NCBI GenBank assembly: GCA_002104945.1
Contig: MCFH01000054.1
Span: 186,001-250,000 of the forward strand
Source of the DNA: Piromyces finnis finn
Taxonomy: Eukaryota > Fungi > Neocallimastigomycota
Direction of reading: 5' to 3'
Length of the DNA stretch: 64,000 nucleotides
Part shown: in pieces, positions 12,232 through 43,901 of the stretch
How positions within the stretch are numbered: position 1 is the stretch's first letter
Layout: every line of letters begins with the position of its first letter
The notes under the pieces: generated by a model
Database searches by the model: none
Told to the model about the DNA's origin: nothing
What the model saw: the letters and a program-made list of their open reading frames with translations, nothing else
Program-made: the position numbers and the translations under genes

Positions 12232-15200
12232 GTATATTTAGTATGTAATTTATATCAATAATTTTATATAATATTAATTTTATAAAAATAATTTTTTTTT
12301 TTTTTTTTAATTCATACCTGTACACCAAAATCTTGCATAACTTTAATTAATGTATTTTTAAGTCCAGGTATTTCCATTTGTTCTGGAATTCTTCGAATTA
12401 ATTTAATAGGATCAATGTAGGAACTTACATTTTCTAATAATCCAACAATAAATTCTAATGGAAGAGAAAAAAAAAATATTTAATATTATTTTATCCTATG
12501 TATATTTCTTTTATTATTATTCTATTTGTATATTAAAATAAGATTTGGGGGAATAATGAACTTACTTGGTTTATCCATTGAATAATTTATTAAATCTTCC
12601 CAGAGATCTGGATCATTTTGTTGTTGAGCAAATTCAATAGCCTATACATTTATAAAAGTAGTAATATATTTTAATAAAAAAAATAAAATTGTATAAATAT
12701 ATAGAAAGAGGGAGATGGATTGCCTTAGTGATATAATTATTTATGAATAAAAATTATATTTTTATGCAATTTTTCATTCATTTATTCTTTTTTTTTTTTT
12801 TAATCGATAATTACTCTTTGAACATCGCCTAATCTACTAATGATTAAATTGAGGGCTTCCTTATTATTACCCATTTGACCAAGTAAATAGACCATTTCAG
12901 GTACAAGATCTCTTGCTTCACATATTTTATAGGCATTTTCTAGTGAATAATAATTACTTGTTCTTAAAAAGGATAATAACCTTGGATAGTCATACTCGGC
13001 ATAGAGTTCAATCTTTTAAAAATAATAATACCAAATAAAAAAAAAAAAAATTAAAAAATTGCATTAATAAATACCAATTATAATAAATAATAATAAAAAA
13101 AATTGTATTGGAGGAGGTATAATCTAATAATCATTTCTCCCTTATATTATTATTATTATTATTATTATTGTTGTTGTTGTTGTTGTTGCTGTTATTGTTG
13201 TTGTTGGTATTGCTGTTGTTATTATTGTTCTTTAATTTATATATACATATATATTTTTTTTATTTCTATTTCTACTTTTTAAAAATACATACTTGTAATT
13301 TATGATAGTCATAACCTTCATGAAAATCTTTCTTTAATAAAGCATCTAAATAGATATGCAAATATTTTGGGTAGGGATAGAGTTGATTGACAACTTGAGA
13401 AATCTAATAGTTTAATTTATCAAGATATTAATATTTTTAAATAATATATCAGCATGAAAAGGATTACATTTTTACAAAAAAAAAAAAAAAAAAAAAAAAA
13501 AAATAAATTAAAAATTAAAAAAATATTTCTGTTAAATTATTTACCAAAATTCTATCGGTATTTTCAACTAAAATTTTAACGGCATCTCCTTTAACCGCTT
13601 CACGAATTTTTTGAAGAGGTGTAAACGTAAAGGTTTCTTCAACAACTTTATTAATAAGATTAAAATTCTTTTCTGATCTTGGGGTGATATTACCTGATTT
13701 TTTAGTGTCTTCTTCATTATCACTATCCACTGTACTTGTAATATTACTAGTAATATTACTGGTTGTATTACTATTAGTCATACTACTGGTTTTACTGGTT
13801 ATACCATTTTTAATGGTACCATTAATAACTTTAGATTTATTTTTTAATGATGCTTTTTGTTGTTTTTTAATTAAACGACTTTCAACAAAATGTTCATCAT
13901 ATTTCATCATTAAAACAATTAATGGTTCTAACATACTATATAAATTATGCTTTTTAATTAAATCTAGTGCATTCGGTCTGTATATTTGTAAATAATAGGA
14001 TAGTGTCATGTCAAATTGTTTATTATAGGTATATCTTGAGGAAAAAAAAATAGTTTAAAATTAAAAAATTTCAATTTTAAAATGTAAATAATTAAAAGAT
14101 AATTATTAATTAATTATTACTTTTTTTTTTTTTTTATTTTCTATTAATACTTTTAGAAATTTTTTAATGAAAAATAAAAAAAAAAAAAAAAAAAACTTAC
14201 AAATCGGCCAAGGTACTTAAAAGAATGTCATTTTTAGAATCTTTTTCAAGTTCGGCTTCTACAAGAACAATAATTTCTGATATGTTATATATTGTTGATG
14301 GCCATTGTTCAATTTTATTATAAAATTTCTTTTTTTTTTTTTTTTTATAAATAAATATATTATTATGAGGAAAATAATGATGATAAATTAATATAATTTA
14401 TAGGATATAATTATATCAATATAGTAATAAATAGTAGAAATCTTTTTAGAATTTTGTATGAAAAAGATAATTACCACTTTATCATGCTTTAAAAGATAGG
14501 ATAATACTAATTCATATATAGATGGATTAAGTTGAGGGTTTGCATGTGGTATATATGGAATAATATCCTTTTTATATAAAGTAAAAATATATAATTTTTT
14601 TTTTTTTTAAAATTAATATTTATAAATAATACCATCAAAATAGTTATAAATACAACTAAAAAAAAAAAAAAAAAAAACATGAAAAGAAAATGAATATTTA
14701 TTTACTAAAAGTTTATCGGCTTCATTAAATGTTATAATCCATTCTTCCCATAATTTTCCATTTTGTCTTAAAATTTTTGGACATACAGCAGCAGCCTCGG
14801 AATAACGTTCTATTTTAATTTTAATTTTTTTTTTTTTTATATAATTTATTTCATTAATTAACCATTAGTTATTATTTAAAAAATGATTTTTTAATGAAAA
14901 AAAAAATATTATTCATCTTTTAAAAAGCTTTCATTTCTTACTCTCTTCTATAAGGGAAGTAATATATTTTAAACCTATATCTACTATATCATGTATAGAT
15001 CTACCACCATAGGAAGAATCTGCTTGTTCAACTGCAATTAATGCTTCTTCATAATTCTTCTTTTCTAATAACCATTCAATATGATCCTCAAGATCTCTTG
15101 GTTTTGCCAATATAATGGTTTTAGGTGATGAAATATAATATGTATTTTCTGATACAATATGTTCTATAGTTTTTTTTTTTAATTGATAATAAATTGAAAA

Positions 15201-23890: not shown

Positions 23891-26800
23891 TTATTGTTTA
23901 TTTTTTGAATTTTCTAATGGTATAGAAACAATTCCATAAATTTGGGATAATGAATTAAATAATAATTCGAAATTGTTTGTTACTAATTTGTATATTTCAA
24001 CAGGAATCTTTTCTTTACTAACACCAATATAATCTACCCATTCCCATGATGTAGCGTCACCTATAACCTTTAATTGAGGTTCTAACACAATGGGTTTTAT
24101 TGCTTTAAATACCATATCATCATCATCATCTTGACTCTTAAAGAGATCTTGATGTTTTTGAGACATTATATTAATTTCATCATTAATTTGTTTTTTATAT
24201 TCTCTCATCTTTTTCTTATCTTCATTAATATCATTTTCTTTAGAATTACCTGTTCGTTCTTGTTTTTTATTATTGGATTCGACGTTATAATCAATTGATT
24301 CTAATGTGCCGGTTCCTGGATTATCTTTGGAATCATTATTAATTGTACTCAAATATAATTTTATTACATTAATTAAATAAATATACAATCCAAAGTTAAG
24401 AGCAACATCAATAGGTTCACTGAAAGATGAGTCAAAGGAATACTCTATTAATTTCTCATGCAGATATTTACTTGCATTAAGATTAATAATTGTTTTTGGA
24501 ACATTTAATATATTTTTCGATACACTTTCCTCTAAATAAGCAAACCATTTGTCAATTTCAAGAGAATTTTCATTTTGCTTAGTTACAAATTTGTAACTTC
24601 CTTTAACTACCTTAATTCCATCACAGGAGAATTTTGTTTCTTCAATAATCCTTTTAATATCTTCTTTTTTAATAACTTGTTGTGTATCATAGTTTAGCTT
24701 AACATCAAGAACTAGCTTATTAGAGTTAAGTCTTACTGAATCAGGATCTTTAAAATTATATCTAAATGCTACAATTAATGCCTTTTCTAATGTGATTGTA
24801 ATTACACCGTAGAGGGAACAGAAAATTTTTGATGAAACATCAAATATATAGTCATATGCAATCTTTTTGATGATATTTTCTTTTATCTTTTCTTTTTCAT
24901 TCTTCTTCTTTTTCTCGTTTTCCTTGTCACTAATATTATTATTTGAAGAAAGTAAAAGTTGCTTTTCTATAATAAAGGAAGAAAATCTATTGTATATAGC
25001 CATGACCATAGAAATCGTCTTTTTGGAAACACATACTTTAATATATTTAATTACTGCATCTGTCTTTAAGAATAATTTTGGTTTTTCCATTAATTGATAT
25101 AAATCACTAATTACTAGGTAGATATCAGTTATATCTAATAAGAACGTTTTATCAAATTGGTATACCAAGTCAGAATATATTCTACCAATTTTATTCAAAC
25201 TTAAAGCTGAATATGAATTATTGTCTTTCGATAGTGATAAAATTGGATTTCTGACATCACCATTCATATTAATATTATCGATTTTCAGGTATCCTTGTAA
25301 TTTTCCTTCGGTAGTTAATGATATACTCTTAATGATAAAATCCGCATTAGATCTTGGTATATTCTGTTTAATTACTTTATTATAGCATAAATTTATCATT
25401 TCAAAATTAATATCACCTTTACCTGTAATCTGACTTAAATCATAAATAAAATGAATTTTCCCAATATTTGCCATTATATAGAATGAAAAGTTATTCTTAG
25501 ATGTAGATAAATAATCTGTAAATTCCATAGAAAATGATCTCTTTTTTCCGATAGTAGAACTTGTGTGACTATTAACCGATACGCCAGTATTACTTTTATT
25601 GATAGGTTCAATGGCATAATTAGTATTGTTAACATCACTACCTAAATTATCCGTTATCTTCAATAACGTGCCTACCCATACATCATATAATATTAAGAAA
25701 TCTTGAAGATATCTTATATTAAAATTCATTTTTATTAAAGGAATATTAAATTCTCCAATGTTAGAATAGTCAAGAATACTTTCATCAATATTTAAAAATG
25801 TATAATTAACAATAATTTTAGTTAGGCAAATGTCAAAGAAATGCTCAGGAGAATAGGTATTATTAACCAATAAAGATAAATCACTAAGGTTTAATGATGA
25901 AATAAATGAATGTCTACTATCGCTGCTTAATGCGTATATTGTAGTAAGAGATATGTTATTAAAATGGAATATACACATTGCATTCGAATCTGGTTGGCAT
26001 GATAAACCAAATTTTGTTTCACCTATATGCATATTTACACATAAAATATGACCAATAAATATAGAAAGTATATCTTTTATATTTGAAGGTTTTGACACTT
26101 CATTATTCTTTACATTTTGTTTTAATTTATCCTCTGTTTTAAACCTATAATTATTAATTTGAATAATATTAATAGTTGACTTTAAGTTTATAACAAATTG
26201 ATCAATAAATCTTATCAGAGATGGCCTCAAAATATTTTCTGTTCCAGATATATCGATATTCAGGAATATTTGATCAAAATCGGTATTCGAACAATCAATT
26301 AATTTTTGATTAACTGCTTTATTAAAACATAAAAAGAAACTAATTTTAGGGAAATTGAAGATATGAAGATTTACTTTTTTATTATTGCCATATTCATTAC
26401 TGTTATCAAATTCATTATAATTTGATGATATTTTTAATACTGAGGGTTCAAATTCACATTCTACTTTTATCCTACTTAATATTGAAAGATCAAATGATTT
26501 CTGATTTTTATTATTATCTTTTTTTGCATTAACTTCATTATCATTTTCCATTGAAATTAAATTTTCATAATCACTAAATCTTCTTAAACTTCTGTAATAC
26601 AATTTTACAATAAGATCAATATATATCGAAAGATCTAAATTTAAATCAATGGATACCCCATTATTTGAACTTTTAACTAAATACATATCTTCATTATTTT
26701 CATCCTTTATAGTATTTATTAAAACTTCACATTTTGGAAGAGCAATTCTATTTTCAACTGGATGAGCTAATGGTGAAAAGTTTTTCGAATCAAAAGATTC

Positions 26801-29800
26801 AATAAATTGAATAAATATATCATAGAGTCCAAAATTAGAGGAATTTTTTAAGAAATCCGTATTGAATCTTAATAATCTTAAATACATATAAAATACTCTT
26901 CCATTTTTCGTTATTGGTGCTGAAACATTATTTATATCAGCTAATGGTATAATGGTGGCAACTCTACTTATTGTAACATCTAGTATTAAATTATCTAAAA
27001 ATTCAAATCCATTTGTATTATTATTATTGTTGTTACCATTAATATTGCTCTCTTTATTACTATTGCTATTTGTAAGAGCATTAGTACTTTCTTCTTTAAT
27101 GTTATTTTCAAATGATATTTCATTTTTTTTTATAATATTTTTCTTTGAAAAGTCATTTTGAATTTTCTGAATTTCCGTTTTAAAGGACATTGAAAATTTC
27201 ATAAACTTTTCTACAGATATTACGTGTAATATAGAATGAACATCTTGAATTTTAAGATTAATTTGTTGTTTGATATTTTCAGGATCATTATTAACCATGA
27301 TGAAGTTATTATCCAAGGATAAATCAATATAAAGATAGGCTAATCTATTACTGACTTGATAAATATTATTTGTTATTGAATTAAATGATAAACATATATT
27401 TTTTGAAGATAATTCTCCTAAAATTTTGTTTTTACTAATAAGATTTCCACTTTCAATTTCTTCGGGAGAAAAGTCGTTGATTTTTGCTTTTCCGTGTAAA
27501 CCTGTGATATTAAATGAAATATTTTCAGTTTCAGTTTTAATAATGATTTGGAAGTCTTGCAAAAATAGATATAAACATAATTTAATGTCATATTGCTCAA
27601 ATATATCTTTCTTTTCTTCTGCTTCTTTAACTTCTTCAATTTCCTTTATTTTATCTTCTGTACTTTGATATATATAGAATTTATTATATAAACTTTTAAT
27701 TTGTTCTAATTCATCATTTACTAGGTATGGTAAGAGTACAATGGCTTTTATAATTGATGAAGTAATTTTACAGTGGTACTTATTTAAAACAATATTGGTT
27801 TTAATATTAAATCCAAGATTACTTTTACTACTATCTGTGATGATTATACCTGATATGTTGACTTGTGGTAATTCTGATGAAAAATCACTATCATTACTTT
27901 CAATATACTTATTATTTGTAAGATTTAGTTTAACTTTTGGAGCAGAAATGTTTACTGAATATAAATACATGATTGAATTTGCTTGAGTTTTATCTCCAGC
28001 TTTATTTAATTCTATATAATAATTTGGGAAGTCGATGACCAAACCAGCGGATGAAAATAAATCCATTCTTAAATTAATACTGTTAAATATAAATTTGATA
28101 CCAATATTAAAATCATTAAGAAGAGAAATATCAACATCATTCCATAGTGTACTTTCTTCCTGAATGTATGCATTCTTTGATAGTGCCTTTTCATCCTCTT
28201 CTTTAGTGTTGGATTCAATTTCATTTGTCATTTCATCAATTAAATATTTATACTTGTCTAGATATTCATCAGACCATTTATCAAATATAGAATATAACAA
28301 TATAATGCTTTTTAATACATTAATATTAAGGGAACCTAATGTGACAAGTAATGAAATTTTTTTTGATTTTTCAATAGATTTTGATTTTAATTGTTCAATA
28401 ATTAATTTATTTAAACCACCATGAATACTGAAATCATTAAAATTAAGCTTTACTAATTCATTTTTAATTGGTTTTTCATTATTATAAATGTTTTTTTCTA
28501 TTAAGCTAGATGATAAAGAGGATACCTTCATAACAGTATTATGTTGAATAATCAATTTCTTTATTGTACCCGATGATACATCATTTTTATAATTATAATG
28601 AAGATTTAACGATTCAATTGTTTTGATATGGCTTGGATTGGTATTGTCAAACATTAAATTATAGGTAGATACTGATGAATTATCCAGTTTACACTTTAAT
28701 TCTATTGTGGTTGCTGATGCTTTAACACAAATAGTTTTAATGGAAAATAAACCGTGGAAAATATTTAAATTCTTATGTTTTCTTCGTGAGGATATATTTT
28801 TAATTGATTCCATAATTGTACTGTTGTTAGTATTATTATTATTATTAATTGTATTATTAGAAGGGATTTTATTTAATTTATCATCTTCTTTTTCATTCAT
28901 TTTGGATAACCAATTAATTGCCCTTATACTATGCTTAGCTAATATAAATAAATTTCCATTTAACACTATATTTATTCGACTAATACCACCATAATATAAT
29001 ATATCATAATAATATTTATTTGCTTCGTAATTCATTTGATCATTATCACTAACTAGTTCTTTTGGCTTCATTAATAAATCTGTTTGGATTTGACCAATGT
29101 TAATATGATTTTTCTCAACCTTATTATCGAATACTTGCAATTGAATCTTTCCAATCTGTAAACAAATTCTAAGATTAGATGGAATATAATTTATTATGTC
29201 AACTTCATTTTGATTTTCAATAGTGTTATTTTTAACTTGTCTATTAAATATTATGTTAATTATTTCACTATTTTCTGATACATTTTCCCAATTATACCAA
29301 TCTATTAAATTTTTCATAGTAATATTATATAAATTATTTTTATCATTAATAGGAATTAAAGTTTTTAAAATATTTCCTGGACGTTTTTGCAATTCGTTCA
29401 TAGCATAACGAATATGGAATAACAATTTCCATCCCGGATCAGATTTATGTGGACTGGTTCCCAGTCTCCACATTGGCGAAGGTTGTGTTAAAAATGTTGG
29501 ATTGGATATAATATGTAATCTATTGGATTCTTTAACAACAGTTGCTATTAATTTTTGTAACTTCCTATTGTTATTATTAAAATCATCAAGAATTGTCATT
29601 AAACTTTTAATGAAAACTATCCATCTAAATAAGGAAGAACTTATTAATTCAAGTGTTTGATTAATTATTGAAATATTAAAGTTTGTTAGATTAAATACCA
29701 CTGATGATTGTGTTAGTGTTTTTATTGGATTATAATATAATTCTAATCTAAAGTTATCGATACACATGTATAAATATGTTGGGTTATGTAATATTTTTAA

Positions 29801-31300
29801 TGTATTGTTATTATAATAATTTGTATTAATATTCTTTTCTTCATCTGGAATTAAAATACCAGTAATACTTGTATTATCAAATTCATTAATAAATCTGAAT
29901 ATATCTTGGATTTTTGAAAATTCAATAAATGTTTTTACTTCTCTCAATTCTGATAAAGATGCATTATCATTTATATTGACTTTTTGACTTATAAAGAAAT
30001 TTAAAAATAAATCTTTTATAATAAATTCGTTAAATGATAATGTATTTTCAGGAGTTCTCATACTATTTTCATTTAAAAATGTTTTTCCTACTTCCGGGAA
30101 TATGACATCTTGAATACTATGGATACAGAGACTAGGTAAGTTTATCAACAAACCAAATGATGATAAAATTTCTTTTATTTTCTTCTCCAACAATATACCA
30201 ACGTACTTTATCTGGAATAAATCAATAAACGTTTCATCTGGTAATCGCTAAATATTATATTATATAATAATTTATTATTTAATAATTTGTTAATGTTAAT
30301 ATTTAGTAAATATTTATTTTTATTTATTCTACTATATAAATTAATCAATATACGTCATAATCTAATGCTTCCACAAATTCCTGAATAATCTTTATACATA
30401 TAGGGGTAATAACAATATTTAATGATTTTGCAAAATCAATAGTTAAAAATACACTATCTTCATTTTCCCTATCCTCATTCAAATCAAAATATGACAAACC
30501 ATTTTTAAATTGTTCATTTTGTAATATTGTTTGAAATGGTAAGTAACTATCATTATCATCATTATTTGCTTCTTTGATAGCATGTATATTATTATTCTAT
30601 TTATATAAATATAATTATTTATATTAATTTAGTAAATATATATATATTCTTTTTTTTTTTATTGGTATTAAATAATTTATTTACATTTATATCATAGAAT
30701 CTATTTAGTGGAGGCATAATATCTGAATTTATTTCACTTGTATATAATGGTGTTGAATCCACTAACAATTGATAGTTATTTAAATATTTTCTATATGGTA
30801 TAGGTCTTTTTTTCGATTCTATTAAATATATTATTTAATTATTAATATTTTAATAATTTTATACTTTTTTAATAAAAAATTAATTATTAATAAAATAATT
30901 ACCATTGATAGCATTTGTTGATACAAATTTTCTTAAATCATTCTCAACATTAAAATCACTTTTACTTTTCTTCCCGGTCTTTGGTTTAAAAAACATATTT
31001 TCATTATCAGAATCACCACTTCAATATAACATATTAATATAGAATAATGTCATTTTAATAAAATTTTTAAATTACCTCTTTTATCTTGAAAATAAAATAA
31101 TATTACCTAAATTCAAAATATTCATTTGATCCATTTTCATTTTTATTCTCATATGAATATAAACTTGATGATATTGATTCACTAATTGGTATTTGAATAA
31201 ATATAGGTAAAAGTTCAAAGTTTTGTTTTCGTGAATGGGTATCTTTATAATTATGTTTTGAAACTAATTTTATAAATAATTATATTATTTTTAAAAAAAA

Positions 31301-31365
<65 letters not shown>

Positions 31366-34300
31366 AATTATTATTATTATGTTTATTATGTTTATTATGA
31401 TGTTTATTATTATGTTTATTAATATATTTTTTATTATTGATAATACCTCTAAATGGAGGAACTAAAACCGGAACATAACTATATATTTTCTCTTCTTCGT
31501 TAATACTTGAAGCATTACTATCTTGATTATCATTATTTTCATAAATAAATGTCATTCTTTTAGTTAGTCTATCCTGGTGTCTAATAAACTCAACTTGTTT
31601 TTCATATAATTCTTTCCAATCTGGTGTTTTTAAATAAATACATAAAGATAAGTTTGTTTCAATACTTGCAACTTCAATCCAAGGGTATGAAGATTCAATC
31701 TAAATTAAAATTATTATTGTTTTTTTTTCTATTAGTTATTATTTCTAATTTATTATTATTTTTAATTTAATGATTATTTAAATATAACAAACATCTTTAT
31801 TGGTTTCAGCTAATGCTAATAAATATACACCAACAAATGGGAAATCTAAAAATATTCTATTGCAATAATGAGTATTTATAGTGTTATCCATTTGAAGTTT
31901 AAAACCATCTTTTAAAAATAAAATTGTTGAACTTCCTTTTCCCCATATTGATAAATCTATTTTATTCATAGTTAATTGTAATGAAAAGAAATCACTAGTT
32001 AATGGTAATTCTAAAATTGCATTATCAAAATCTGAAAAATGATATAAAAAGGTTTCCAAAAAATTCACAAAAGATACTATAAAAAATGGATGTACTTCTC
32101 CAACTAATGATCCAATATTAAATCTCCAATCTGCACCATAAACTAATTTATATGGCATAGGACCAAACATTCTGTGTCCATATATTGATAAATCTTATAT
32201 ATTATTTAAAAAATATAATATGTATATATATAAATTTAATATTATTATAATTTTTATTTCTGTAAGTTTACAAAATCATTACCATCAATATAGAGAAAAT
32301 CATTAGAACAATTCTTTTCAAATACCATAATAGGATTCGTATTAATTTGAATATCTATAAATAATTTATCCATAATAAATTTATTTAATTTACATTCATT
32401 AAACAATTATTTAATAGTATGTGGTAAATATACCTTGAAATTGATCTGTTCCTCTAATTTCAACTTCAAGAAGTTTTGTTTTTAATGTAATATAATTCTT
32501 ATAAGTATATAAACTTTCTGGTAAATAAGCCTCTACATTTTCCGCTTGAATTAATATATTCATATCTAAAGCATTCATTGGCTCTAATTCTAATTGATTT
32601 TGATCATTACTTTTTTCTTGATTTTTTTCTCTATATTCCGATACTGTCGTGAATGAGGCATAATCACCAAAATAATTATCTGCTATTAATACAAAATATT
32701 TAATTAAATAACCAAACACTTTAAATGACACACCGGATCCCTAAATAATATAGATATGAATAATTTATGCTTAAATATTAATAATACATATTATATTTTA
32801 GATATTTTATACATATATATCTAAACAATACCCCTATTTTTAAATTCATTGAATCAACATATTCAGGATTATAGACGGCATAAAATGAATAGTCACCTTC
32901 CAATTCAAAATTATTTATAACACCTACAGGATTTGATTCTTTATTAATATTTTCACCTATTGTATGTGATTTTGGTAGTAATATATCTAAACTTAATGGA
33001 GTATTTTTTGTCTGTTTATATATATTTATTTGTATGTATATTAAATTAATGAAAAAAAGATAATATTTAAAAATGAAAATTATATTGTATTGATTCTTAC
33101 AGAAACTTTAAAGGGTATGCATGAATAAATTGGATTAAATACAGTAAATGGTAAATTTACATTAATGTCTAACAAATCTCCTGATAATGTTAAATAGGCT
33201 ATAAAGATAAAAGATATATATATTTAAATGGTTAATTTCATATTCTATATTACTTTTTTATTATTGAGTTGATTATATTATTATTAATTACAGTTTTGAT
33301 CTATTTCATTAAGTTGATTTATAATGTTGCATTCATTTATACACATTAGTATACTATATTCTTTAAATGTAATATTAATATCATATATAGTTGGAACAAA
33401 ATAATCATTTTCAATTGGTTCACCCTCTGTCCAATCTGTAATTAAATCAGTAATTAATGTTATATGATCTTTAAGTAAAAATATTTTTGTTTCTAAAAAT
33501 TGAATATCAAATGGCATTGTACGTTCTTGATTCCATTTTAATGGTGCGGGTATCGTTGCGTTAATCTAATATGAAAAATGAAAAATAAATATTATAACAA
33601 TTTTTTAAAATATAATGTACATGGTTATTGTCACTTGAAAATTTTTATTGTATTTTTTTCAAATTTATATAAATTATTGAATATTTTTGGGAAACAAACT
33701 TTTAATTGAGAGCCATTTAAAAATACTGCATAATCAATACTAGTAGTAACTTTTACATTTAATAGATTTACATCTAATTTTCCTTCATATCCTTCTTCTG
33801 ATATAAACGATGGAAGTTCATAATAAATGTGTGATCCTTCATCAAAATTTACATCAAGCCATGCATATGGTCTTACACTTTGTTCTTTTCTTTTATCTTT
33901 TTTAGATTTTTATTATCATTATCATTTTGATTTTTCCACAAATTATCCTATTATATATATAGAGAGAGATAGAGAGAGTATTTTTAATATTTATTAATTT
34001 TTTTCATTTCAATAAATGAATATATACCTTTGAATGTTCTTTCGTCGGTACTCTTGCTGTTCCTTTTTCTTCGAAAATTATAAATAATTTCATTGCTGGT
34101 GCTACTCTTAATTGACCTGATGTAGGAGGACTTACTATTTCCATATCTCTAAATGAAAGAGGATAAAAGAAATACTGTAATAATAATCTTTTAAAGAATA
34201 AATATAATTAATAAAATATATATAATATTTTAAATATATGTCATATTAAATAATAAAAATACCTATTTCTATCCGTCCATGGACCATAATTTAGTTGTGC

Positions 34301-36155
34301 ACTATATAATTTTATATCAATTCTCCATTCAGGTAAATTTTTCTGACTTTCTTCATAATATTCTGAATTGACTGGAGGAACTGGACCTAATTAATATAAT
34401 TTGTTATAAAGAATTGTACTTAATATTATGCATTTACACTTTTATCAAATTTTCGAATTTCGATGCAATATTAATATAATATATATCAACCTGTAACATC
34501 AGAATACATTGAAAGAATTAATTCTTCTGATTGAAGTAGTATGGGAACACGTGCATATTCATTTTTATCATCTTTATTTTCACTTCCTTTATAATTATTT
34601 TGGTATGTATTAAATGGAATTAAGGCTTAATTATTTACATAATATATAAATCATAATATTTATATTATAAAAAGGATATCTTGCAAGTCCAGTCCATGTT
34701 GTTTTCTTTATATTACTTTCATTTTTAGTATTTTTTATTTTTTTATTTTTATTAAATAGATAATTAAATGTAAAAACATATTTTACCCTATCTTTTAATG
34801 ATTTTTTAGAACTTTTTATATTTTTTAATATTTAATATAATAATATAAGAATAAATGTTTTTCTTTAATAAATAATATATTAAAATATACATTAAAATAT
34901 ATTATAAGATTTATGATTATTACCTATTGACAAAGTTATTAATGTCATTTTTTCTATAATTTATATGATCTGAATTTGCTCTTATACTAACTACAGGTTT
35001 TATTAAATCAACATTCAATTTCGTCATATAATAATCAAAAATTGAACTTGCCTATAAATCATTAATAATTATAAAGTATTAATTATAAATTTAAATATAT
35101 AAATATAAAATTATTACAATGACTTACTGTATCAACAGAATAGGAAACTTTCATTCCATTAAAATCAGCAACTAAAATTGAAGGAAGATCTCTGCTTCCA
35201 ATATATACAGCACCTTTATTAACTTCTACATATATTGGTAATAAACTTTTAAATAATTTATCTTTATTGACTTTATTTGGAAGAATATATTCGCCAATAT
35301 TTGTCACATTCACTTTCAAAAAAATAAAACCATCAGTTTCATTCTATTACTTTTATTATATATATTATATATATATCCATATTTATTATAACGATTTTTA
35401 TTTTTTGTTATTAATTTTTACCTGCTACGCTTTCATTAGATTCTCTTCTTAATATTCTTTTTAAATCTTCATATACTGCCATATTGTTATATATGTAATA
35501 TTCCAAACCTTCTGCAAATACTCTCACTCTTGATGGTTTTTCTTCATCATCTATATTATTTTATATTAAATTTATAATTATTTATCACACCAAATAAATT
35601 GTTAATTATTAATACATTACCTCTAAAATTTGAAACAAGTTGCATTTGTTTTTCTTTTTTCGTTTTTGCTTTATTAATGAATGACCAAAGTACTGTAATA
35701 TACCCTCGTTCAATATAGATTGATTCATTTTTTGATATATAACTCAATTTTTTAAATAATATTGTTCCACTTAAAGGACATATTACAATATTTTCTTATA
35801 TAAAATAGATATTAAATGTATATTTAATATAATTAAGGAAGGTAATAAAGATAAAACTAATTTTTATAATAATATACCTATATTAATTAAGGTATTTAAT
35901 TTGGGCCAGGTGTATATATTAATCAACTTTATGAAAATAAAAGTAAAGAATCTACTACTATAGAGTAGTAATAAATATGCTAATAAAACTATTAGCAAAC
36001 ATCTATATATATTATATAGATCAAATGTTAATAAATAATAATAAAATTATAATATTATAACTTTTATGTTGTTACCTTATTGTTAAATTTATAAATTGAA
36101 CAAATTTATCTTTCGATTGTACTGGCTCTTCGAAATAAACTTCATAAAGAGCCAT
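23891..36155 (-). CDS. CSF1: Bridge-like lipid transfer protein Csf1/BLTP1 (KIAA1109/Tweek family); about 23 exons, terminal exon 23891-30247
   Basis: N-terminal TM helix followed by LYSSRFFTFIFIKLINIYTWPK; NESIYIERGYITVLW; GLEYYIYN; LLPIYVEVNKGAVYIG; EYARVP; PEWRIDI...YGPWTDRNR; RPYAWLDV; IYGHRMFGPMP; C-terminal LEPQLKVIGDATSWEWVDYIG. These match my recollection of fungal Csf1 blocks. One apparent single-base frameshift lies near 33910. Confidence 0.88.
31305..31420. repeat. (TTA)n microsatellite in a CSF1 intron
   Basis: About 20 uninterrupted TTA units followed by degenerate TGTTTATTA units. Confidence 0.9.
34607..34679 (-). other. U12-type (minor spliceosome) AT-AC intron in CSF1, 73 nt, phase 2
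   Basis: Minus strand: GCA AG|ATATCCTTTTT...AAGCCTTAATTCCATTTAATAC|A TAC CAA. Splicing gives TTWTGLAR-YQNNY. Read-through of the unspliced intron reaches TAA. Confidence 0.85.
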
Positions 36156-37346
36156 TGTTATTTTATCTTGTCAATATTACTAATTTGTTAATTGATAATA
36201 AATTTCATATTTTTTAATTAAAAAGAATTTATATATTGTTAATGCTGCTGTTTTATTTTATTTTACTTTATTTTATTATATTTTTTTTATTAAATAGTTT
36301 GGTTTTGTTTTTATGTCAATGATATTTTAAATTCTATTATTATTTCTAATTAAAATTTTTTAGATAACAAATTTAACACGATAATATAAATTAATTTATT
36401 TTAATATTTAATAATTTTTTTTTTAAAAAAAAAACATAGTGGAAAAGAATATATTTAATTATTAATAAAATGGGTTATAATAATTATATTTCATTAAATA
36501 CTTAAAACTATGTTATTAATTATTATAGATATAAAATATTAATTAAATAGTTAAAATGTTTATTGCTTGAGTTAAAATAACCTTAAATGAATATTCTTGA
36601 TTTTTTTAATTTTAATCAATAATATTAAGTAAAATAAAATTATTAAAATCAATGGTTATTTATTAAATTATACTTTAGAGAATTAATTAGAATTAATTCT
36701 ACACTACTATCAATTTTCCATATTTTCTAAATTGCAATGAATACATATTACATTTAATTAATATTTTTAAAGCCATAAAATAATGTTTTTATCTTAAAAT
36801 ATTTACCTGCGCTATCATCACTACATTTAAAGACTTTATGCATATACAAAATTTTAATAGTAATATGGTTATATTATCACTGAAGTGTTTATTAATTTTT
36901 ATTTTTAATTATTTTTTTGTTCAATACAATCAATTATGGCAATGTTAACTGATTAAATTATACTTAATATAACTAAAGAAATAAATAATTCAAAATATAT
37001 TTTAATATGTTTTTAAATAATAAAAATGAAGTGTTAAGTAGAACAAGATAAAATTGAATAAATATTATAATATTTAACTTTTTTTTTATTAAAAGGTTAT
37101 AAATTCTTTTTTATAACCCTTTTTTTATTTATAAGTTTTTTTAGTTTTAAAAAATTTTATTAATAAACTTTTACCATCGGGTATTTTTTTTTTTTACATA
37201 TAGAATAACTATAAAAATATTTATATTTTATCCAATAAATTTTTTGTAATAATTAAATCGTTTTAAATATATATACATTAATTATTAACTTTATTAACGA
37301 CAACTTTTACTAAAAATGATAAAGAATCTAATACCAAGGAAGTAAC

Positions 37347-42531: not shown

Positions 42532-43901
42532 ATGGGAAAGCATTCGCATGATATTCCATGGAAAAAATATAAAGAAATTCTCGAATTTGAAGGTTATTAT
42601 TTGAGTTTGTCTATTTCAATCATTCATTTTGTATAATATATATTATTTATATTATATATTAAGATCCTAATAAAATATAAAAGTTTAAACTAATTCTTTA
42701 TAATTATTGAAAATATTTTTCATATAACCCTATGTATAATTTCACATTAAACAGAGCCTCCTGAAAAACAGTATATAAAAGGTAAATATTTAATTTTTGA
42801 AATTAATTAAAAATGAATATTTAATAATTAAATATTCATTTTCTTTTCTTTTCTTTTTTTCTTTTTCTTTTTATACTTTTAATATCAAATAAAAAATAAT
42901 TCTAATTAATATATTTTTCAAATTAAAGACAAAACAAAATCTGAATTAGAATATTCTGTTCTTTTAGAAGATAATATCCTTTATAATATTATTGAAAATA
43001 ATATAAATTCGTTATAATAGTAAAACCATTTAATTATTATTCCTTAATTTCACAAAATTAACACAAGAAAATATTTAATATACCAATAGAAGATGAATTT
43101 ATAGTAGTTTCTTGTAATACTTGTAAAAAGCCAGTTTTACAAAGTGCTTTATTATACCATTTAGGTAAGCAAATTTATAAATAAAAAAATAAAAGTAATT
43201 TATATTAAATAAAAAAAAAATTTTTTAATAACATAATAAATAATTAGAAAATTGTAAAAAGATAAAAAAAATTCAAGAAGAATCTGGTCCTTTGAAAAAA
43301 GATATTCAATTAAGTGTATTCTATGCCTCTAAACCACTTCCAGTAGTAAAACCAAAGAAAAATAAGAAAAGAAAATTAACCGAGGGTAAGAAAGACAAAC
43401 TTTTTAAAAAAATTTTTTTTTTATGAAAATTAATAATTAACTAATTAATATAATAATAGATGGTCAAATTATTGAAAAAGAATCTAAAAATAAAGAAAAT
43501 GAAACTGTAAAAGAAAAGAAAAAAGCTAAAGATAATGATAATGCTAAAAAGTCAACAAAGAAAAAGAAAGGTAAGAAAAATTATTGATAATATAAGCATT
43601 AATTATAAATAAAAATTTTAAAAAATTGTAGAAAATAGATAGGGTATAATTTTTTTTTTTTTTTTTTTTGTAGTGAAATACTAATAGATTATTTAATTAA
43701 TATATATACTAAATAAATTATTTAGGTCCAATTGATCTAGATAAACAATGTGGTGTTATGACAGAAAATGGTACAGTATGTACTCGTTCTTTAACATGTA
43801 AGATCCACTCAGTATCAGCAAAACGTGCTGTCCAAGGAAGATCTCAAGATTATGATACACTATATAGAGCAACGAGTAGATTAAAAGGTAATAATAATAA
43901 T

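Follow-up and report, generated by a model that had tools for sequence, protein, structure and literature searches.

A probable U12-type AT-AC intron, missed by public annotation, in the split CSF1/BLTP1 gene of Piromyces finnis

Results

The CSF1/BLTP1 locus and its exons

The window, by which we mean the whole 64,000-nucleotide stretch of Piromyces finnis DNA that was analysed, has a G+C content of about 19%. Its minus strand carries a multi-exon gene with short introns which, judged from the predicted protein, is a Csf1/BLTP1 homologue. The features discussed below are as follows.

23891..36155, minus strand: CSF1/BLTP1 gene, starting from the ATG at 36155, with 10 or more short N-terminal exons before a giant last exon
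36155-36076, 36002-35878, 35794-35621, 35550-35422, 35312-35128 and 35051-34924, minus strand: exons 1-6, equal to the public model BCR36DRAFT_304366 except for the exon-2 acceptor
34680..34811, minus strand: exon 7 (132 nt), in frame with exons 6 and 8 and homologous to the Anaeromyces robustus protein P0008
34607..34679, minus strand: putative U12-type AT-AC intron of 73 nt, in phase 2, which interrupts the Arg codon of WTGLARY
34679-34678, minus strand: AT terminus of the AT-AC intron, as read in the sequence
34671..34679, minus strand: 5' splice site ATATCCTTT, as read in the sequence and identical in four other Neocallimastigomycota
34619..34625, minus strand: branch-site box CCTTAAT, with the branch A at 34620 or 34621
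34607..34608, minus strand: 3' terminal AC, kept in all six species
34626..34716, minus strand: in-frame GT-AG candidate intron, 91 nt, with GT at 34716-34715 and AG at 34627-34626
34491..34606, minus strand: exon 8, beginning with the third base of Arg318 and continuing as YQNNYKGSENKDDKNEYARV...SDVT
30193-23891, minus strand: giant last exon, 2100 aa, 100% identical to the public protein P0001

Joined together, exons 1-10 gave a stop-free frame of 451 aa. The model behind it has six GT-AG introns, then exon 7 and the AT-AC intron, and three more exons after these, and the frame was open only with the AT-AC splice or an in-frame alternative. The product of exon 7 reads ...SKKSLKDRVKYVFTF...NIKKTTWTGLA plus the first two bases (AG) of Arg318, and its counterpart in the A. 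robustus protein reads NKKSFSEKVKYIFTL...KKTTWTGLPR. We infer the 5' boundary of exon 7; a second in-frame acceptor would put the exon start at 34787.

The full product is predicted to be about 3,300 aa, similar to other fungal Csf1, which occurs as one protein of about 3,200 aa in other fungi. Like fungal Csf1 and metazoan BLTP1, it combines Csf1_N and BLTP1_N matches, the arrangement WxGLxRY...EYA[KR]V, a hydrophobic N-terminal segment and this length of about 3,300 aa. It differs from them in its C-terminal exon of 2100 aa (23894-30193, minus strand), for which a Pfam search gave no match at E<=0.01, and a bridge-like lipid-transfer role is putative. Some fungal Csf1 proteins carry a Csf1_C domain (PF25038).

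Two further places in the gene were noted. Near 33897 the frame shifts by one base in an A-run (around 33946-33880, minus strand), passing from DNLWKNQNDNDNKN to KSKKDKRKEQSVRPYAW; this frame change may reflect an indel in the assembly or may be genuine. Two orthologous contigs (L007, and L001 of A. robustus) have one continuous open reading frame across the matching region, and P0001 sidesteps the frame change by an intron that also removes the conserved GQLRVAPAMKLFIIFEEKGTARVPTKEHSK. In exon 2 (around 36002-35954, minus strand) the later acceptor used in the public model loses a hydrophobic segment, CLLIVLLAYLLLLYSS, which is probably an N-terminal membrane anchor; the Orpinomyces protein P0012 retains an equivalent hydrophobic segment, CILVALTSYMLLLYSG.

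Public annotation of the gene

Two public P. finnis models cover the gene. The first, BCR36DRAFT_304366 (P0011, 257 aa), spans exons 1-6 and ends in ...NNFVNR, a read-through into intron 6 (GTC AAT AGG TAA). The second, BCR36DRAFT_586752 (P0001, 2983 aa, "hypothetical protein, partial"), has the Pfam domains Csf1_N and BLTP1_N and starts with ENKDDKNEYARV at ENKDD, within exon 8 and just past the AT-AC intron. Exon 7 is missing from both.

Residues 1-900 of P0001 scored 150.4 bits against Csf1_N, above the Pfam gathering score (cutoff 98), and P0011 alone scored 63.6 bits, under that cutoff. For BLTP1_N the scores of P0001 and P0011 were 64.1 and 32.1 bits, both under the Pfam cutoff of 100. 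The BLTP1_N profile positions run on from P0011 (66-253) to P0001 (286-554), and the two public models are therefore successive stretches of a single domain.

The public P. finnis annotation thus missed the intron and presents a single gene of about 3,300 residues as two. Predictors that expect GT-AG termini are blind to such an intron, so that one model stops at exon 6, the other starts inside exon 8 and exon 7 is lost. The first-pass annotation had expected standard predictors to choose the in-frame GT-AG intron instead. This is not what happened in P. finnis, where the gene was split and exon 7 dropped, but it did happen in the chytrid Quaeritorhiza haematococci, whose public model uses an enclosing in-frame GT-AG intron by which the motif is lost and SQWAGLSRYKTA deleted. 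The 257-aa model of P. finnis is also found in Piromyces sp. E2.

In A. robustus, too, the public annotation divides the Csf1 gene (L001:5527-17071), here into P0008 (968 aa) and P0005 (2261 aa). There the break falls just before the giant exon, and P0008 begins at an internal Met, without the first exons.

Signals of the AT-AC intron and their chance level

Direct reading of the minus strand bore out the intron signals given in the first-pass annotation for 34679-34607, namely the 5' splice site, CCTTAAT, the terminal AC and the lack of a pyrimidine tract. The 5' splice site ATATCCTTT conforms to the U12-type pattern [A/G]TATCCTT from +1. The A residues of CCTTAAT at 34621 and 34620 lie 14 and 13 nt from the last intron base, in agreement with a U12-type branch box (TCCTTAAC-like, about 10-15 nt from the 3' end), and the stretch upstream of the box is A-rich. 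The termini are of a U12-type kind (AT-AC or GT-AG, without a polypyrimidine tract). The upstream exon ends at 34680 in ...TGG ACT GGA CTT GCA AG and the downstream exon begins at 34606 with A TAC CAA; joining 34680 to 34606 gives AGA (Arg) followed by TAC (Tyr), and so W-T-G-L-A-R-Y.

We then counted the signals in the window. ATATCCTTT occurred three times against 3.04 expected from shuffles. A composite U12 signal, defined as ATATCCTT, then YYTTRAY, then 10-13 nt, then AC, occurred twice against 0.69 expected; among windows simulated with a first-order Markov model (Markov-1), 45% held at least one composite signal and 19% at least two. Both counts are at chance level, and motif counting was rejected as support for a U12 intron. 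The U12 signals are present yet, taken alone, not above chance in DNA of 19% GC, and the case must therefore rest on conservation and protein evidence.

The only composite match in the window besides the CSF1 intron was at 42974-43062 (plus strand, 89 nt), where ATATCCTTT is followed by TTCCTTAAT with the A 15 nt from the terminal AC. The third ATATCCTTT, at 14563-14571 (plus strand), has no branch box plus AC after it and looks like a chance match.

Conservation of the intron across fungi

Contigs carrying orthologues of the giant exon were compared, one from A. robustus (L001) and three derived from metagenomes (L002, L007 and L010). All four of these other Neocallimastigomycota orthologues have an AT-AC intron at the same Arg codon, reading TGG ACx GGA CTT xCA AG and then ATATCCTTTT, and in all four the exon after the intron reads ATA[CT] CAA AAT AAT TAT. 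Their introns are 82-90 nt long and otherwise unrelated in sequence. In the alignment ATATCCTTTT was identical in all five Neocallimastigomycota including P. finnis, and the YYTTRAY box stood exactly 13 nt before AC in all five, despite the differing lengths and sequences of the introns. As a control, the GT-AG introns on both sides conserved only GT or GTAA. The A. robustus intron (BCR32DRAFT_266435, P0008) shares the codon, ATATCCTTTT and the AC end with that of P. finnis, and differs in having 84 nt rather than 73 and the branch box TGTTAAC.

An AT-AC intron with the same codon and phase was also found in Q. haematococci (L013:3819-3938; protein KAJ3089847.1, P0016), where the junction reads CAG TGG GCC GGG CTC TCC AG, then the intron ATATCCTT...TCCTTGACTCCACTGAAC, then A TAC AAG. 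It resembles the P. finnis intron in its AT-AC termini, in ATATCCTT and in its place in the Arg codon (there of WAGLSRY), and has a branch box, TCCTTGAC, 11 nt before AC. Unlike the P. finnis intron it is 120 nt long and lies in a genome of 48% GC. Over the six species the only conserved parts of the intron were the 5' site, the branch box at 11-13 nt and AC. The shared AT-AC intron in Quaeritorhiza indicates that the intron was already there before Neocallimastigomycota diverged from at least one lineage of chytrids.

The intron is absent at this site in the chytrids Phlyctochytrium arcticum, Borealophlyctis nickersoniae and Lobulomyces angularis, as well as in three Mucorales, in which the motif has diverged. 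In L. angularis (L018:2223-2250) the sequence reads GCC AGA TAT, the Arg and Tyr codons of the spliced product elsewhere; these uninterrupted codons are as expected after precise intron loss. Missed U12 introns were considered as the cause of the absent WxGLxRY in Pilobolus, Gilbertella and Absidia and were rejected, the genomic sequence there being continuous and the motif diverged.

The protein motif and profile test

The WxGLxRY motif, which the first-pass annotation had placed before the EYA[KR]V block of fungal Csf1, proved to be real. A search with the N-terminal protein of A. robustus gave 149 Csf1 representatives, of which 121 have WxGLxR[YF], typically about 21 residues ahead of EYA[KR]V. 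In P. finnis the distance from WTGLARY to EYARV is 21 residues, solely with the AT-AC splice. Across the orthologous AT-AC junction the sequence of the public A. robustus protein P0008 is ...KKTTWTGLPRYQNNYKG...EYARV, so the A. robustus annotators had already accepted this junction.

A Csf1 profile was built from 123 segments carrying WxGLxR[YF], none of them from Neocallimastigomycota. Against it the AT-AC isoform scored 52.7 bits, compared with 29.4 for the GT-AG isoform and 32.6 for skipping of exon 7. The first-pass reading of the site as an AT-AC intron in Csf1/BLTP1 is supported by the identity of the homologue, the conserved intron position and the profile scores.

RNA data and transcript searches

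Three runs from the same organism (X1-X3) were labelled "RNA?", their RNA nature being a guess. They contained fractions of 0.47, 0.44 and 0.30 of the words sampled in 33000-36200, which comes near the proportion of exon in that region, about 0.5 by rough estimate. The GT-AG alternative would take away at least part of every 31-mer of 34680-34746. In a thin sample of three words from this interval, X2 and X3 each held 3/3 and X1 held 0/3. The words in X2 and X3 argue thinly against exclusive use of the GT-AG junction. X1 covers the gene region best of the three (0.47), yet it held none of the three words of the 3' part of exon 7; this gap could be due to a contig break, exon skipping or an alternative donor.

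One exact and one degenerate scan of metagenome contigs gave no match to the spliced junction. Protein searches for open reading frames of P. finnis transcript contigs returned annotated genome models only.

Discussion

We conclude that 34679-34607 on the minus strand is very probably a true U12-type AT-AC intron, lying between exons 7 and 8 in a single CSF1/BLTP1 gene. We judge it to be real because its position, phase, ATATCCTT start, branch box and AC end are conserved and because its removal would restore the Csf1 motif.

One alternative is the overlapping GT-AG candidate, which the first-pass annotation had correctly described as in frame and as deleting the motif, and whose splicing would put TLIPFNT in place of SNIKKTTWTGLAR. 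That the major spliceosome removes 34716-34626 as the main or only event, with the AT-AC signals a coincidence of AT-rich DNA, is very unlikely. The candidate is in frame and has a typical donor, GTAATA, the composite U12 signal is not rare by chance, and run X1 is without words from the 3' part of exon 7; but the GT is missing from L001 and L002 and the AG from all orthologues, in L007 the nearest equivalent would shift the frame (by our own count on the sequence), the splice loses WxGLxR at a cost of 23 bits on the Csf1 profile, and X2 and X3 retain sequence across the candidate donor. Less improbable, though still unlikely, is that the GT-AG intron 34716-34626 serves as a regulated alternative, with two spliceosomes in competition, so that Csf1 would either contain the WxGLxR block or lack it; the difference between X1 and the other two runs, X2 and X3, in the words of the 3' end of exon 7, which X1 alone lacks, could be a trace of such regulated alternative splicing.

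On the public annotation there would be no intron here, and two genes, of 257 aa and of 2983 aa, would stand apart, the DNA that separates them being untranscribed or untranslated. NCBI/JGI annotate BCR36DRAFT_304366 and BCR36DRAFT_586752 as two genes and the 257-aa model recurs in Piromyces sp. E2, but the 257-aa model runs into intron 6, the second model is flagged "partial", one Pfam domain runs on from the first into the second, the exon 7 that both omit is conserved and keeps the frame, and other fungi have one protein of about 3,200 aa, so that we give this arrangement hardly any credence. A real AT-AC intron removed by the major (U2-type) spliceosome has just as little to recommend it. 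U2-type AT-AC introns do exist, as a rare class that the major spliceosome removes, but positions +3 to +9 of the P. finnis intron are TATCCTTT, unlike the U2-type pattern, its U12-type branch box lies 13 nt from the 3' end without a pyrimidine tract, and the 5' site and branch box are the only intron parts conserved in six species.

A 5' site of the ATATCCTTT type is recognised by U11 and U6atac, and the branch box by U12. Taking the U12-type AT-AC intron as real, and reasoning from established minor splicing, the U11/U12 di-snRNP would pair with ATATCCTTT and CCTTAAT together. U4atac/U6atac.U5 would then replace U11 and complete the spliceosome, the A at 34620 or 34621 would attack the 5' site, and the exons would be joined as AG|A to give Arg318.

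The intron resembles the U12-type AT-AC introns that have been catalogued in eukaryotes, P. finnis among them (Larue & Roy 2023), in its ATATCCTT 5' site, its TCCTTAAC-like box 11-13 nt from the 3' end and its terminal AC, and also in having no pyrimidine tract, a non-zero phase and a position shared by distant relatives. The P. finnis branch box, CCTTAAT, differs from the full TCCTTAAC consensus. A literature search for a U12 intron in BLTP1/KIAA1109/Csf1 found none, one apparent match concerning THOC2. Neocallimastigomycetes, including P. finnis, have minor introns and many or all of the minor snRNAs (Larue & Roy, NAR 2023, PMC10639083). An Rfam scan of 1-35346 and 35391-64000 of the window found no RNA gene and hence no minor snRNA gene, so it is the literature that gives evidence of the splicing machinery. 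Since the intron is missing from the P. finnis gene models, an annotation-based catalogue for P. finnis could not contain it.

Minor introns in P. finnis are thus already published; what is new is the missed intron in the split CSF1 gene. The CSF1 intron leaves existing knowledge of minor splicing unchanged. It adds one ancient minor-intron position invisible to annotation-based catalogues, and it is the same intron that damaged the gene models of Piromyces sp. E2 and Q. haematococci. The corrected gene model unites two P. finnis proteins annotated as "hypothetical" with an exon absent from the annotation, as one Csf1/BLTP1 gene.
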